Shown piece by piece: positions 48,369 to 56,385 of a stretch of DNA of 64,000 bases. Position 1 is the stretch's first letter. Each line of letters starts with the position of its first letter. The notes below the pieces were generated by a model. It had not been told where the DNA came from and ran no database searches. It worked only from the letters and a program-made list of their open reading frames with translations. A program made the position numbers and the translations under genes. The stretch lies in IMG/VR virus record IMGVR_UViG_3300037805_000644, positions 124,001 to 188,000 of that record; one strand, written 5' to 3'.

Positions 48369-49760
48369 TCAGCCGTTGAGGTTGGCGATTGCGGAGCGGA
48401 TGCGCTTCACGATACCCGGACCCTCGATGGCGCAGATGGCGTCGATGATCGCAGGGGAGTCCGGGTAGCACTCCACTGCCTCAGAGACCCGGGCACGCCA
48501 GTGCTGGCTCTTGTCCCAGGTGGCCACGATCTCTTTGATCGAGTCCTCAGGGCTCTTCCGCTGCGGGCCCGTGTGCTTGAGTCCCTGAGTCAACTCCTGA
48601 ACTGCCTCCTCGGGGGGTCGTGCGGCGGCGGCGAAAAGGGAGTCACCCGGTGTTGGTGTGGAGACCGCACCCGCCCCCATGGCGTCCCCAATGGAGCGAT
48701 CAATGGTCACGATCAGGTCATCGTGCTGGACGACCGGCATCGAGGCTCGCCGCATGTGCGCGGGGTCTACCCCGTCGTCAATGGCGGCGACCTGAGGGGC
48801 CGACCCCACGGTCACAGTGGGGTTCTGCCACTGAGGGGTCCCCCCCACCTGGGCCTGTAGGTTGCGGATGGCGCCCTGATCCCGAATCAAGGTGCCCGCA
48901 GACTCACTGTTCAGGACGGCTCCCGACTGGGAGTCCACCATGACTCCCCGGGTGTTGGTGTATTCCTTGAGCTTGGGATCACCCTCATAGCTCGCAGGGG
49001 CCGAGATGGAGCTGGTCTTGACCTGCCCGATGGAGGTGCCCTGCTGGCTATCCATCGCCTGCACGGTGAACTGCCCCTTGGCGCCGACACGGCGGCCACT
49101 GGACCCATCCGCCGAGTTGTGTCGCTCCCCCCCCATGCTGACCGGCTTCTGGATGGGCTGACCGTACGCGATCTGGTTGATCACAGCGCCATTGTACTCG
49201 TCAGTGGCAAGGCTGAACTCAGCCTCCGACTTGTACTCTTTGCGGACAGGCCAGGGCGGGATGACCCCCTCATCAAACCATGCAGGGACGACCTGCCCGT
49301 TGGGGAGCTGCTTACGGCCAGGCACGTACTGCACCTGGGCCTGACGCCCCGCAGCCTGCTGTTGGGCAGTCTGCGGCTGCTGTGGGGCAGTCTGCGGCTG
49401 CTGTGCTGCCTGCACGGAGCGAGGGGCGTGGACCTGGCCGACGACCTGCTCCTCCTCGGTGATCACTGCCGTCCGCATGGCGACCCGGTCACCCTTGGTG
49501 GTGTCCGCCTGATGAAGCTGCACGCCCGCAGGCTGCGCCCGGTAGGTCGAGGAGGTGTCCGAAACGGGCACCAACCAGCCCCCCAGGACGGCGCCCTTGA
49601 GGGTGGGCATGGGGTGGCTCTCACCGCCCATCTTGAGGGTAATGCCGTCGAACTCAACCTCCTGGTCTTTAACCAGGTCCGTTTGGATGGGGCCGAGGTG
49701 GAAGGTGGTTGTGGCACGAAGCTTATGAAAGGTGCCGTGCTTGAATTGAATCTGACTCAT
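48369..49760 (-). CDS. hypothetical protein, Gln/Pro-rich
   Basis: 463-aa ORF with AAGGA RBS. Confidence 0.7.
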   Translation of the reverse strand: MSQIQFKHGTFHKLRATTTFHLGPIQTDLVKDQEVEFDGITLKMGGESHPMPTLKGAVLGGWLVPVSDTSSTYRAQPAGVQLHQADTTKGDRVAMRTAVITEEEQVVGQVHAPRSVQAAQQPQTAPQQPQTAQQQAAGRQAQVQYVPGRKQLPNGQVVPAWFDEGVIPPWPVRKEYKSEAEFSLATDEYNGAVINQIAYGQPIQKPVSMGGERHNSADGSSGRRVGAKGQFTVQAMDSQQGTSIGQVKTSSISAPASYEGDPKLKEYTNTRGVMVDSQSGAVLNSESAGTLIRDQGAIRNLQAQVGGTPQWQNPTVTVGSAPQVAAIDDGVDPAHMRRASMPVVQHDDLIVTIDRSIGDAMGAGAVSTPTPGDSLFAAAARPPEEAVQELTQGLKHTGPQRKSPEDSIKEIVATWDKSQHWRARVSEAVECYPDSPAIIDAICAIEGPGIVKRIRSAIANLNG

Positions 49761-49827: not shown

Positions 49828-50112
49828 TCAGTGGGCTGCGCTGGGTGTCATCTCGACCAGGGCCAGGGTCCCTCGGAGCTGGTTGATCATGACGGGCAAG
49901 AGTTTCGGGGAGACCCGCACCCGGGCTACCACCAGGGCTCGGTGCAGGGTGGGGCTGTACAGCAAGAATTCCAAGAACACCCGGGAGGGGAGATCTCCGT
50001 CGAGTACCCGAAAAGCATTGGCATAGACCCCGAGTTCCAGGGGGGGCTCGATGCTGATAGCGAGGTCCACCGTGTGGCTGTCCGTCATCCGGTGCCTTTG
50101 GAAGGGGTTCAA
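49828..50112 (-). CDS. DUF3467-like small protein
   Basis: GVYANAFRV..FLEF..VVARVRVSP; true start probably MTDSH. Confidence 0.6.
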   Translation of the reverse strand: MNPFQRHRMTDSHTVDLAISIEPPLELGVYANAFRVLDGDLPSRVFLEFLLYSPTLHRALVVARVRVSPKLLPVMINQLRGTLALVEMTPSAAH

Positions 50113-50157
50113 GGTTAAACCTTACCGGGTAAGATGGTCAGATTGATGGAGGTAACT

Positions 50158-50589
50158 ATGCAAGAATATGTCGCCGGGTTCATGTTCAACCCTTCCATGA
50201 CCCAGGTCGCCCTGATCAGGAAAAACAGGCCCCCTTGGCAGGCAGGCAAGCTCAATGCTGTAGGCGGGAAAGTTGAGCCTGGGGAGGACCCTTTGAGGGC
50301 GATGGTTCGGGAGTTTGAGGAGGAGACCGGAGTTCACCATGAGAACTGGGAACCCACGGTCATCCTGTCTAAGGATGGGGCGTTCCGGGTCCATTTCTTC
50401 CGAACTTTCTCAGAGAAAGCTTATCAGGTAAAGACCGCCACGGATGAACCCATCGATCTCTATATGCTGGACGATCTGAATGATCTGAATGCAGGACCCT
50501 CTTCGACGACGGTCCCTAACTTGGCCTGGCTGGTTCCAATCCAACTGGATCTCCACCTGGCTTTCCCGGTGGTGCTCGTAGAGAAGTAG
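50158..50589 (+). CDS. Nudix hydrolase
   Basis: GGKVEPGEDPLRAMVREFEEETG Nudix box; GGAGG RBS before ATG 50158. Confidence 0.93.
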   Translation: MQEYVAGFMFNPSMTQVALIRKNRPPWQAGKLNAVGGKVEPGEDPLRAMVREFEEETGVHHENWEPTVILSKDGAFRVHFFRTFSEKAYQVKTATDEPIDLYMLDDLNDLNAGPSSTTVPNLAWLVPIQLDLHLAFPVVLVEK

Positions 50590-50594
50590 TTGGG

Positions 50595-50633
50595 AAAAGA
50601 AAAACCCTCGACACACAAGGTGTCGAGGGTTTT
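50595..50633. terminator. bidirectional intrinsic terminator
   Basis: aaaaccctcgacac-acaag-gtgtcgagggtttt; longer U-tract on minus strand. Confidence 0.9.
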
Positions 50634-50777
50634 AGAGGATCCGAAATGCTGCGGACTGCACGAAAGCTTCCAGACAGCAGTGGGTATTCACGAAGGCAAC
50701 GGCACCTTCCTCCCCACTCGGGAGGCTTGACGTGTCTGTCAAGCCCAACCACCTTAGATGGTTCCGTCTTTAAGGGG
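50595..50777 (-). ncRNA. candidate ~180-nt structured small RNA
   Basis: Between a sigma70-type promoter and a terminator, no credible ORF, several adjacent hairpins. Confidence 0.6.
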
Positions 50778-50783
50778 ACTGGG

Positions 50784-50812
50784 AATCTACACTGTGGTGC
50801 CCCGCCAGTCAA
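50784..50812 (-). promoter_or_regulatory. sigma70-type promoter TTGACT-N17-TAGATT
   Basis: -35 at 50812-50807, -10 at 50789-50784. Confidence 0.7.
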
Positions 50813-50816
50813 GTAA

Positions 50817-52196
50817 CTAGCGGTACTTATCCGCAGTGTAAGAGATTTCGGGAACCTCCACCGAACTCTTGGGGGTGACCCCCGCCTCTGCCTCGATCCG
50901 TGCCGTCAGGTTACGCTGGGACTTGTCCGCCAAGGCGGTTCGCCGCTCATGGGCAGCCTGCACCTGCACCAACTCCAGGTGCAGCTCCTTGATGCGAATC
51001 GACTCCTGCCGCAAAATCTCCAGGCTTGCGTCCAGGTCGATCTGCTCCTGCACATGTCGCAGACGTGCCCGCTCCAGAGCGGCCTCCTCTCGGGCTTCCT
51101 GGTCGGCGGCCAGCTTGGGCAACCATTCCTGGTTGAGGTAATAAGAGAGCGCCGCAGCATGACCCCCACTCAGCTTGAGGTGCCGGGCCTCTGCCTCCAG
51201 GACTACCTCGTACTGCGTCTCGATGTGGAACATGCTTGGGGCCTCCTCGGGCAGCAAGTCCTCGGGGATCTCCTCGGGATCCAAGCCCTCGGGGGTCAGG
51301 CTCGGAGGCTCAGGCGACGCGGAGAGGGGCCCCCACAGGGTGGGAGACGCGGAGGCCAAGGTCACCAGGGCGGGACGGGGGACCGGCTTCGGCGCGAGGC
51401 GTGCCCGCATCGGACAGGCTCCTTCAAGCAGGGCGTCAAAATCGACATCCTCATCGCCCCCACCCGTCTCTGGCTCCGAGAGGGCCTTGGTGGTGTCCGA
51501 GATCACCCTGGAGACCACCTCCTCAGTGATATCCCGCTCAGGAGCCTTGGTGGTGAGCGCATTCGCAGCCACACCCTCTGCCAGCGCAGTATCCCTCGCG
51601 ATCACGGGTGTGGCCTGCCAGGCCCCTCCGATGCGCTCGACGGCACCCGCCCAGGCCCAGGCGGCACCCGGGGGGGCGTCAGGCACCTCAAGGCCGTTGC
51701 GGAGTGCCCGGAGTGCCCGGAGTGCCTGATTCGGAGTCAGGGCACTACGCTGGGCCACCTGGAGAGGAGTCAGCAAACCATCTGCCTGCTGGAGGATGGC
51801 CATCACCAAAAGGCTGGCGGCATGATCCTTCGAGCGGGGGCTCAGCAGGAAAGATGCCCAGTCCGCAGCCTCCAGGCGGGCCCAGACCAGGGACCCATAG
51901 TGGGTGATCTTGAACAGGGGGTCCCCAACGCCGGAACCAGTCCCTTGGTAGAAGACAAGGTTGGAGCCCTCAGCCAGAAGGGCAAGGTGTGCGAACACCC
52001 GGTTGTAGCTCCCGGACGACCGGAAAGTCTTCCCCGTGTGGAGGGACACATGGCCGCCAATGGTGGCCATGTCCAGGCGTCGGCCCTGCTTAGCAAGCTG
52101 AGCAGCAGCTCCGAAAGTCAGGAGGGTGGCCCAAGAGGGCGTGTTGACCCTGCGATGGATACCGTGAATGTCGAAAATGTTGGTCGTATCGGCCAC
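50817..52196 (-). CDS. hypothetical protein (possible wHTH plus coiled coil)
   Basis: 459 aa, AAGGAG RBS; class I variant at 52228-52254. Confidence 0.65.
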   Translation of the reverse strand: MADTTNIFDIHGIHRRVNTPSWATLLTFGAAAQLAKQGRRLDMATIGGHVSLHTGKTFRSSGSYNRVFAHLALLAEGSNLVFYQGTGSGVGDPLFKITHYGSLVWARLEAADWASFLLSPRSKDHAASLLVMAILQQADGLLTPLQVAQRSALTPNQALRALRALRNGLEVPDAPPGAAWAWAGAVERIGGAWQATPVIARDTALAEGVAANALTTKAPERDITEEVVSRVISDTTKALSEPETGGGDEDVDFDALLEGACPMRARLAPKPVPRPALVTLASASPTLWGPLSASPEPPSLTPEGLDPEEIPEDLLPEEAPSMFHIETQYEVVLEAEARHLKLSGGHAAALSYYLNQEWLPKLAADQEAREEAALERARLRHVQEQIDLDASLEILRQESIRIKELHLELVQVQAAHERRTALADKSQRNLTARIEAEAGVTPKSSVEVPEISYTADKYR

Positions 52197-55435: not shown

Positions 55436-55468
55436 AAAACCCTGGCAGGTTGCCCTGCCAGGGGTTTT
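55436..55468. terminator. intrinsic terminator after the major capsid gene
   Basis: aaaaccctggcagg-ttgc-cctgccaggggtttt. Confidence 0.85.
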
Positions 55469-55512: not shown

Positions 55513-56385
55513 TTAGCGGGTGACGGTGAGGCGGGCCAACCCACGGGGGTTGTAGGCGCCGATACCCAGGTTCTCGAAGACCGAGAAACCGATGGTACGT
55601 GCCTTGGGGTCGTCGGCGCTGAGCACGGTCAGCTCGGTGCGGACCGGGATCCGACCGAAGTGCTCGGGCTCGCAGCACAGGTAGACCGTGCCGACGGGAA
55701 CCAGGCGGCTCACGACGATCTGGGCACCGTAGATGACGCCCATGAGACCAGTCTTGAGCAGGGTGCCCTGGGACTCGATGTCCAAGATGTCACGACCGAA
55801 CTTACGGATGTCCGCGTAGTCACGGGCGTTCATGTAGACACGAGCAACGCGGAGGTCCCAACGCTCGATGAGAGCGAAGGCATCAGCCAGGACCGCACCC
55901 GAGATGGGGGCGATGACCGGGATGTCCGGGTTGAGCTGACCAGGCAGCGAGTCGAAGCCCGCAGTGGCGATGGAGTCGAGCACGGCAAAGACGCGCTCAT
56001 CCTCGGCAGCCTGCACCTGGGCACGGGCCAGGTCCTGAGCACGCTCAATCAGATCGAAGCGGCGCTCCTTGATCTGGGTGAGCGGGATCTCCGGGTTCGA
56101 GGCAATCTCGAACAGGGGGAAGATCACACGACGAGGCTTGGTGATGGCCAGGATGTTCTGACCTTCCTCACCAATCACGAATGCGGTCACATCCGGGTCT
56201 TTGTCGTAGATCGGCAGGGCCCCGTCAGGAAGCTGCTCGACCAGGAAGGTCTTGCGGCCGACTGCGGCGTAGTCACGCCGGGTACGGAGGGGCTGCGTCA
56301 TACTGGCAGCGAGCTTGGCCCGTCCCTGGGGGGACTGGATCAGCTCGCCGATGAGGCGTTGCTTGACGGCGTTTGTAACGGCCAT
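55513..56385 (-). CDS. major capsid protein (HK97 fold)
   Basis: KLAASMTQPLRTRRDY..FLVEQLPDGALPIYD, PLFEIASNP, GFSVFENLGIG; gene order protease-scaffold-decoration-MCP; strong RBS. Confidence 0.88.
   Translation of the reverse strand: MAVTNAVKQRLIGELIQSPQGRAKLAASMTQPLRTRRDYAAVGRKTFLVEQLPDGALPIYDKDPDVTAFVIGEEGQNILAITKPRRVIFPLFEIASNPEIPLTQIKERRFDLIERAQDLARAQVQAAEDERVFAVLDSIATAGFDSLPGQLNPDIPVIAPISGAVLADAFALIERWDLRVARVYMNARDYADIRKFGRDILDIESQGTLLKTGLMGVIYGAQIVVSRLVPVGTVYLCCEPEHFGRIPVRTELTVLSADDPKARTIGFSVFENLGIGAYNPRGLARLTVTR

Follow-up and report, generated by a model that had tools for sequence, protein, structure and literature searches.

RESULTS

A predicted small RNA gene lies between two convergent protein genes

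We examined a 64,000-nt stretch of phage DNA (referred to as the window), which corresponds to bases 124001-188000 of the 222,939-bp IMG/VR record IMGVR_UViG_3300037805_000644. The record comes from seawater metagenomes, has a G+C content of 61%, and is rated 42% complete by CheckV, which implies a phage of roughly 0.5 Mb. The locus of interest is a 227-bp gap. On one side is a gene encoding a 459-aa protein (50817-52196, minus strand), which has no Pfam or PHROG match and no word-level homologue among 5.8 billion proteins. Codon-position G+C supports the minus-strand reading of this frame over the overlapping plus-strand frame. On the other side is a convergent NUDIX gene (50134-50589, plus strand). 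Further along the minus strand are a conserved gene encoding a 94-aa protein (49828-50112) and a gene encoding a 463-aa protein, and the major head protein gene lies at 55513-56385.

On the minus strand of the gap, beginning 5 nt after the stop codon of the 459-aa gene, a promoter scan identified the sigma70-type site TTGACT-N17-TAGATT, with the -35 hexamer at 50812-50807 and the -10 hexamer at 50789-50784. We infer from sequence alone that transcription starts at about 50780-50776. Predicted folds of the downstream sequence contain hairpins at 50763-50747 (P1), 50746-50723 (P2), 50709-50692 (P3a), and 50679-50647 (P4). A terminator scan identified a strong intrinsic terminator at 50633-50595, consisting of a 14-bp hairpin (50633-50601) followed by the T-tract UUUUUCUUUU. 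The terminator hairpin is flanked by an A-tract and a T-tract, and it faces both the 459-aa gene and the NUDIX gene, which ends at 50589.

The observation made in the sequence-only reading, a promoter followed by closely packed hairpins and a terminator on the minus strand, is therefore confirmed, although three of its details are not. A hairpin it placed at 50725-50709 (CCUCC/GGAGG) is an alternative fold that is not supported by covariation, and the comparative data described below place those bases in stems P5 and P3. It counted four GGA trinucleotides, whereas five are present. Its statement that no RBS-led ORF exists is inaccurate, as a 38-codon ORF with a TTG start (50748-50632) sits behind an SD-like AAGGTGG.

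Within this genome alone, neither the promoter match nor the fold is statistically compelling. The promoter scan returned 1 site in 11 kb, compared with 1.8 expected. Genome-wide, 22 sites of this quality were found on both strands of 223 kb, only 2 of which lie in non-coding DNA. The z-score of the fold was -4.7 with the terminator but only -2.0 without it. We therefore turned to comparative data, and the evidence that the element is more than chance comes from the homologues described below.

Homologues occur in related huge-phage contigs

The four seawater sequencing runs that hold this region are listed as DNA and carry contigs identical to the window, and thus they provide no sequence variation; no RNA run was listed. 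Searches of IMG/VR for direct relatives of the 459-aa protein, the NUDIX protein, and the exonuclease returned nothing. Exact-pattern scans for the RNA core were similarly uninformative. Two metagenome scans and two genome scans found nothing, viral scans gave only chance hits (contigs L010, L033, L035, and L036), and the five hits to a further viral pattern, whose loop was one position too long to match true members, were also due to chance.

Relatives were instead obtained through neighboring proteins. The 463-aa protein led to a 402-kb phage (G001) and a 90-kb Logan contig (L008). The family of the 94-aa protein led to a 727-nt contig (L011) and to many more distant contigs, and an alignment of the roughly 460-aa proteins led to further IMG/VR loci. 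The gene order is conserved, with an upstream gene, the gap, sometimes NUDIX and/or NT5C on the opposite strand, the small protein, and then the roughly 460-aa protein. As the homologues were found through these proteins, the observed gene context is biased by how they were collected.

L008 and L011 contain obvious homologues of the RNA. A 44-nt core is almost unchanged, with 42 of 44 positions identical in L008, whereas the RNA body as a whole is 69% identical in L008 and 60-69% identical across these homologues, about the same as the flanking coding DNA (55-69%). The hairpin stems differ in sequence but still pair.

We then built covariance models in three rounds, which recovered nine distinct members, some of which recur in duplicate samples. 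The compact members are the window, L008, and L011, and the distant members are the contigs L013, L016, L017, L024, L029, and L031. The window scored 118.8 bits (E = 3e-23) against the model built from six sequences. L024, L016, and L017 were absent from the training alignment and still scored with E values from 3e-10 up to 1e-8 or 2e-8. The model was specific, with a single hit in the 223-kb genome and none in the 402-kb G001, and each member genome carries one copy.

The family is small and patchy. G001, the closest fully sequenced relative, lacks the RNA; a short intergenic region of this phage shows a few blocks that resemble the core but gave no model hit, and we treat it as a possible remnant only. 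Several more distant relatives that have the same gene block (L046, L048, L050, L052, L012, L023, L026, and L028) also lack the RNA. The RNA is therefore an accessory element that is dispensable in some genomes.

To determine whether the RNA belongs to a described family, we compared it with the 4,227 models of Rfam 15, which include tRNA, tmRNA, SRP, RNase P, 6S, pRNA, riboswitches, ribozymes, and GOLLD/ROOL. There were 0 hits at the gathering threshold in the window. At E ≤ 10, only the terminator hairpin gave weak hits, the best being sX11 at 30.9 bits (70 required). None of the nine loci holding homologues matched a family at the RNA, and ARAGORN found no tRNA or tmRNA.

The RNA is predicted to fold into a pseudoknotted core

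Automatic MAFFT alignments of the RNAs were structurally wrong in the variable stems, and we therefore used model-based alignments. On the nine-sequence alignment, 98.1% of cells form standard pairs, compared with 77.9 ± 1.7% in shuffled alignments (0 of 500 shuffles reached the observed value). Controls in which the partner was slid by 1-3 columns gave 35-53% pairing. Of 23 pairs, 14 show changes on both sides (0 of 500 shuffles). All helices pair in all members, and an alignment of six sequences gave the same picture. One caveat is that nine sequences are few and that an alignment made by a covariance model leans toward the structure of that model. However, the pseudoknot was not part of any model.

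The pseudoknot is the most telling feature of the fold. The five bases immediately before P1 (GACGG, 50768-50764), in the single-stranded 5' tail CUUAAAGACGG, pair with CCGUU (50702-50698) within the 8-nt loop of P3a. Across members, this pairing takes five forms: GACGG with CCGUU or CCGUC, GGUGG with CCACC, GAUGG with CCAUC, GAAAG with CUUUC, and GAGAA(G) with (C)UUCUC. Three of the five pairs change on both sides, and one pair takes four different pair types.

P1 (50763-50747, AACCAUC-UAA-GGUGGUU) directly follows the tail, and all seven of its pairs show changes on both sides among the nine members. The conserved core spans 50718-50679. Within it, P3 (AGUGGG/CCCACU) encloses the internal loops GAG and GUGAAUA and the P3a helix GAAGG/CCUUC (50709-50705 with 50696-50692). 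Four of the six P3 pairs covary, for example to GACGGG/CCCGUC and GUCGGG/CCCGAC, whereas P3a is invariant in all nine members. The internal-loop bases are conserved as GGGGA-N on the 5' side; the other side is GUGAAUA in the compact members and a variable 6-7-nt segment, mostly ending in UGA, in the others.

P2 and P4 are specific to the compact clade and also covary. P2 (50746-50723, GGGCUUGAC-AGACAC-GUCAAGCCU) shows compensatory changes against L008, and L011 has an entirely different stem sequence (AGCAAAAGC/GCUUUUGCU). In distant members, a longer segment replaces P2. The P4 hairpin (50678-50648 as delimited here) has a variable interior and an outer stem that reads GCUGU/GCAGC in the window, GCUGC/GCAGC in L008, and GUUAC/GUAGC in L011, which includes one compensatory pair; this was read directly from the three sequences rather than scored statistically. 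A closing stem, P5, in which CGG (50643-50641) would pair with CCG (50721-50719), is predicted by minimum-free-energy folds. The 3' strand lies inside UUCGG(G)AU, which is conserved in the three compact members. However, P5 has only two to four pairs and shows no covariation, and it remains tentative.

Promoter and terminator sequences are conserved across three size classes

In all eight members whose upstream DNA is available, a sigma70-type promoter precedes the RNA. It reads TTGAC(T/C/G) in seven of the eight and TTGCGC in L008, followed by N16/17 and a TA-initial -10 element. The position aligned with the TAGATT of the window reads TAGAGT in L008 and (TA)GAGT at the edge of contig L011. 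The six distant members also share an A-rich AAAAGATCG further upstream. The genes upstream of the RNA are unrelated, encoding lipoproteins, coiled-coil proteins, or the 459-aa family, and conservation of the promoter despite these differences is the real support for the promoter match in the window.

The distance from the -10 element to the pseudoknot strand falls into three groups, 14-15 nt (window and L008), 107 nt (L016 and L017), and 202-207 nt (L013, L024, L029, and L031). Every member ends in an intrinsic terminator. L008 and L011 have a terminator at the same place as the window but with a different stem sequence, and the six distant members have a separately conserved terminator, sharing CCACCG...CGGUGGnUUUCGUCGUUU. 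The predicted RNAs are thus about 180, 375, and 500 nt long around a common core, and the window holds the minimal form. In the larger forms, the core lies between extra 5' and 3' domains that contain several GNRA-type hairpins.

DISCUSSION

Our results indicate that the stretch 50812-50595 (minus strand) is most likely an independent gene for a structured non-coding RNA of about 180 nt, belonging to an RNA family found in a group of roughly 0.4-0.5 Mb phages; we assign this reading, including the mode of action below, a probability of about 0.55. The comparative analysis shows the fold, including the 5' tail, P1, P2, the core domain, P4, and the pseudoknot, as well as a sigma70-type promoter that directly precedes the RNA, a terminator at its end, and larger relatives built around the same core. 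What we infer is that the host RNA polymerase makes the RNA, probably from the start of infection, and that it acts in trans as a folded RNA. In this view, the invariant helix, the conserved internal-loop purines, and the pseudoknot would form a binding surface for a protein or a small ligand, and the RNA would not act by base-pairing with an mRNA or by controlling the gene behind it. Use of the promoter and terminator is likewise inferred from sequence conservation, and the binding mechanism only from the invariant helix and the compact pseudoknotted fold. Expression by host RNA polymerase is plausible but unproven. A host-type promoter is unusual here, as only 2 sigma70-like sites lie in the non-coding DNA of the 223-kb genome.

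The interpretation offered in the sequence-only reading is partly supported. A stand-alone structured RNA with its own sigma70-type promoter and terminator, distinct from tRNA, tmRNA, SRP RNA, and RNase P RNA, agrees with our results, and its immediate expression by host polymerase remains plausible but unproven. Its suggestion of a protein sponge, decoy, or anti-defence RNA remains a hypothesis. A role as a CsrA sponge, which it had considered weakly supported, is not supported. CsrB/RsmZ-type sponges are also stand-alone small RNAs with a promoter, a terminator, and GGA motifs, but they carry many such motifs exposed in the apical loops of repeated hairpins. The five GGA trinucleotides here lie at the junction of the pseudoknot strand and P1, at the junction of P3 and the internal loop, and in the stems of P3a, P4, and P5. 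None is in an apical loop, the only conserved ones belong to the GGGGA-N-GAAGG core, and there are no repeated units.

An alternative possibility is that the RNA is a cis-acting leader of the riboswitch, attenuator, or processive-antitermination type, in which the pseudoknotted domain senses a ligand or protein and sets readthrough into the downstream block (the small 74-94-aa protein, the roughly 460-aa protein, and so on). A compact pseudoknot immediately followed by an intrinsic terminator would suit this reading, as would the presence of the RNA next to this block in every member, although the block is how the members were collected. In L008, L011, L016, and L017, the small-protein gene follows on the same strand, in L011 only 67 nt after the terminator with no obvious promoter in between. 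However, in the other five members (the window, L013, L024, L029, and L031), opposite-strand NUDIX and/or NT5C genes lie between the terminator and the block, and readthrough would be antisense to them. The only candidate antiterminator pairing, between the 5' tail and the 3' arm of the terminator, is no better than for shuffled tails (fraction at least as good, 0.13-0.32), at -6.5 to -9.5 kcal/mol compared with about -23 kcal/mol for the terminator itself, a difference of 13-16 kcal/mol. In addition, about 120-190 nt of further structured RNA separate the core from the terminator in the larger members, and relatives with the same gene block lack the RNA. We therefore favor a stand-alone RNA and consider a leader unlikely, although a cis role is not excluded. 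A component of a phage machine or assembly, or a self-processing ribozyme, is also unlikely. In its favor, the gene lies in the structural-gene region (in L024 and L017, about 0.7-1 kb downstream of the head gene), the larger forms carry many GNRA-type hairpins, typical of RNAs with tertiary architecture, and the 5-bp tail-loop pairing covaries, as does the loop-loop pairing of phi29 packaging RNA. In this reading, the tail-loop pairing, which from sequence alone may form within or between molecules, could build oligomers. Against it, there is no match to Phage_pRNA or to any ribozyme family in Rfam, and absence of the RNA from close relatives with the same structural genes argues against an essential assembly role.

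Two simpler readings fit the data poorly. The element could be merely a structured 3' untranslated region and bidirectional terminator or insulator between the convergent 459-aa and NUDIX genes, with a chance promoter match. Its position 5 nt after the stop codon, the terminator facing both genes, and the lack of significance of the promoter within this genome are consistent with this, but it is very unlikely because the promoter elements are conserved downstream of unrelated genes, the fold and pseudoknot covary far beyond what a terminator needs, and members with no convergent gene behind them (L008, L011, L016, and L017) keep the RNA. We also rejected the possibility that the locus encodes a 36-38-aa peptide (TTG at 50748 or 50742 to TAA at 50634-50632). 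The SD-like AAGGTGG lies 6 nt before the second TTG, and the same spelling is used by a real gene in this genome. However, the frame has no start codon in L008 and has 24 codons without an SD in L011, its termini and lengths differ between members, the SD lies within the P1 stem, and the changes in distant members are compensatory for base pairing rather than synonymous.

Among described systems, phi29-type packaging RNA is likewise a phage-encoded, stand-alone, structured RNA of about 170-180 nt made from a host-type promoter, with a short loop pairing that covaries between related phages. In pRNA, this loop-loop pairing is intermolecular and gives a ring on the portal, and the RNA is required for DNA packaging. 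It differs in fold, which here comprises a tail-to-loop pseudoknot and a P3/P3a core, in occurring in small podoviruses rather than huge phages, and in that the RNA described here is missing from close relatives. GOLLD and ROOL are large ornate phage-associated RNAs with pseudoknots, GNRA hairpins, their own transcription signals, and no known function, and the 375-500-nt relatives resemble them. Neither matched in Rfam, the RNA described here is smaller, with a stripped-down 180-nt version in the window, and it lies next to a head-gene block rather than next to tRNAs. Pseudoknotted riboswitch aptamers with terminator expression platforms (e.g., preQ1, SAM-II/V, fluoride, and ZTP) share a compact pseudoknot fold with invariant unpaired purines followed by an intrinsic terminator, but no riboswitch family matched, no antiterminator alternative rose above chance, and the next gene in the window is convergent, leaving nothing obvious to regulate. 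Short promoter-to-terminator transcripts of lambdoid phages, such as the lambda pR'-tR' "6S" transcript, are also units of under 200 nt driven by the host polymerase and ended by an intrinsic terminator upstream of late or structural genes. Those transcripts are by-products of an antitermination switch and have no conserved tertiary fold, whereas here the fold is the conserved feature and opposite-strand genes usually follow. Type III antitoxin RNAs (ToxI-like) consist of tandem direct repeats of a unit of about 34-36 nt between a promoter and a terminator, with a toxin gene downstream; no tandem repeat was found in 50500-50900, and the downstream gene is the convergent NUDIX gene.

Stand-alone structured phage RNAs of unknown function are already known. 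What is new here is the well-supported fold, with an unusually clear, covarying pseudoknot and an invariant helix, and the natural series of minimal (180 nt) and extended (375-500 nt) versions of one core. A catalogue of about 10,000 candidate structured RNAs from IMG/VR exists (PMC10690425), whose candidates are 29-151 nt long and may include a fragment of this motif; we found no description of it in Rfam or in the literature that we searched. Huge phages carry hundreds of genes of unknown function, and very few of their non-coding RNAs have been characterized. The 180-nt form offers a small, tractable construct for structural work and a defined gene to delete or express, with a host-type promoter in a genome that otherwise hardly uses such promoters. 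If the RNA binds a host protein or a signaling nucleotide, it would be a new kind of phage take-over or counter-defence tool, and if it is only a dispensable accessory, it still adds a family to the catalogue of structured RNAs. A more speculative and doubtful reading is that it is the minimal member of a new class of modular, tertiary-structured phage RNAs of 180-500 nt that work as an RNA machine part or an RNA sponge. It could, for example, capture a nucleotide-derived signal or a host protein early in infection, or assemble with phage proteins through its invariant helix and pseudoknot, which would make it a functional type not yet described for huge phages.

The small protein encoded downstream is a candidate partner of the RNA and nothing more, as its properties are a lead rather than evidence of binding. 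It is predicted with confidence (pLDDT 83.7) to adopt a three-strand-plus-helix fold, with only weak matches to DUF3467 and to PUR-alpha/PC4-like folds.

Larger relatives and a possible remnant of the RNA

Related phage contigs carry RNAs of about 375-500 nt that are built around the same core (L013:1700-2235, L024:2110-2620, L029:2040-2610, L031:1280-1780, L016:3780-4170, and L017:4545-4935). These relatives have conserved extra 5' and 3' domains, several GNRA-type hairpins (GGGGAGACCC, GGGGAAACCC), an A-rich AAAAGATCG upstream of the promoter, and a sequence-conserved terminator tail, UUUCGUCGUUU. They look like a new large structured RNA in their own right. In contrast, the closest complete relative, a 402-kb phage with terminal repeats (G001), keeps the flanking genes, but its gap is only 81 nt (L003:5099-5179, the corresponding locus of G001). 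This gap has no promoter and yielded no hit with the covariance model. However, a few short blocks (GAAGG, UUCGUGA, and CCAC..CUGCUGU) resemble the core, suggesting that the gap may hold a decayed remnant.

We also examined sigma70-like promoter matches across the whole 223-kb genome. Only 22 matches (9 or more of 12 positions) were found on both strands, and just 2 of these lie in non-coding DNA. Most genes of this phage probably use other promoters.

Gene neighborhood of the RNA

A NUDIX hydrolase gene (50134-50589, plus strand) converges on the RNA gene and shares its terminator hairpin (50595-50633). In relatives, the same spot holds NUDIX and/or NT5C (5'-nucleotidase) genes on the opposite strand, or nothing at all. 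The region behind the terminator of the RNA seems to be an insertion hot-spot for nucleotide-metabolism genes. In L008, a 90-kb contig from the Logan assemblies, a second strong hairpin (AAGGGGCCUGCC...GGCAGGCCCCUU; L008:5440-5485) follows the terminator of the RNA. Read on the opposite strand, this hairpin carries a T-run, although no opposite-strand gene is present, and it may be a leftover from a lost NUDIX-type insertion.

Only 21 nt (50113-50133) separate the divergent starts of the NUDIX gene (50134) and the gene encoding the 94-aa protein (50112). This spacer contains the palindrome AAGGTTTAACCTT, which leaves no room for ordinary divergent promoters. The 94-aa protein (49828-50112, minus strand) belongs to a conserved group of proteins of 74-99 aa with a GVYANAFR...LEFLLYS motif and about 100 homologues, many of them on contigs of 100-500 kb. 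It is predicted to adopt a three-strand-plus-helix fold, which gives only weak DUF3467 and PUR-alpha/PC4-like matches. The gene heads a conserved block that encodes a protein of about 460 aa, one of about 241 aa, one of 740-900 aa, and a Zn-ribbon protein. The 463-aa protein (48369-49760, minus strand) matches no Pfam or PHROG family and has a Gln/Pro-rich low-complexity center flanked by conserved N- and C-terminal domains.

The major head protein gene (55513-56385, minus strand; phrog_2522, E 1e-50) is followed by a strong 10-bp GC-rich terminator with a T-run (55440-55463). In L008, a 656-aa LAGLIDADG homing-endonuclease-like ORF (L008:320-2290), which has no counterpart at that place in the window, sits between the head protein gene and the exonuclease gene.
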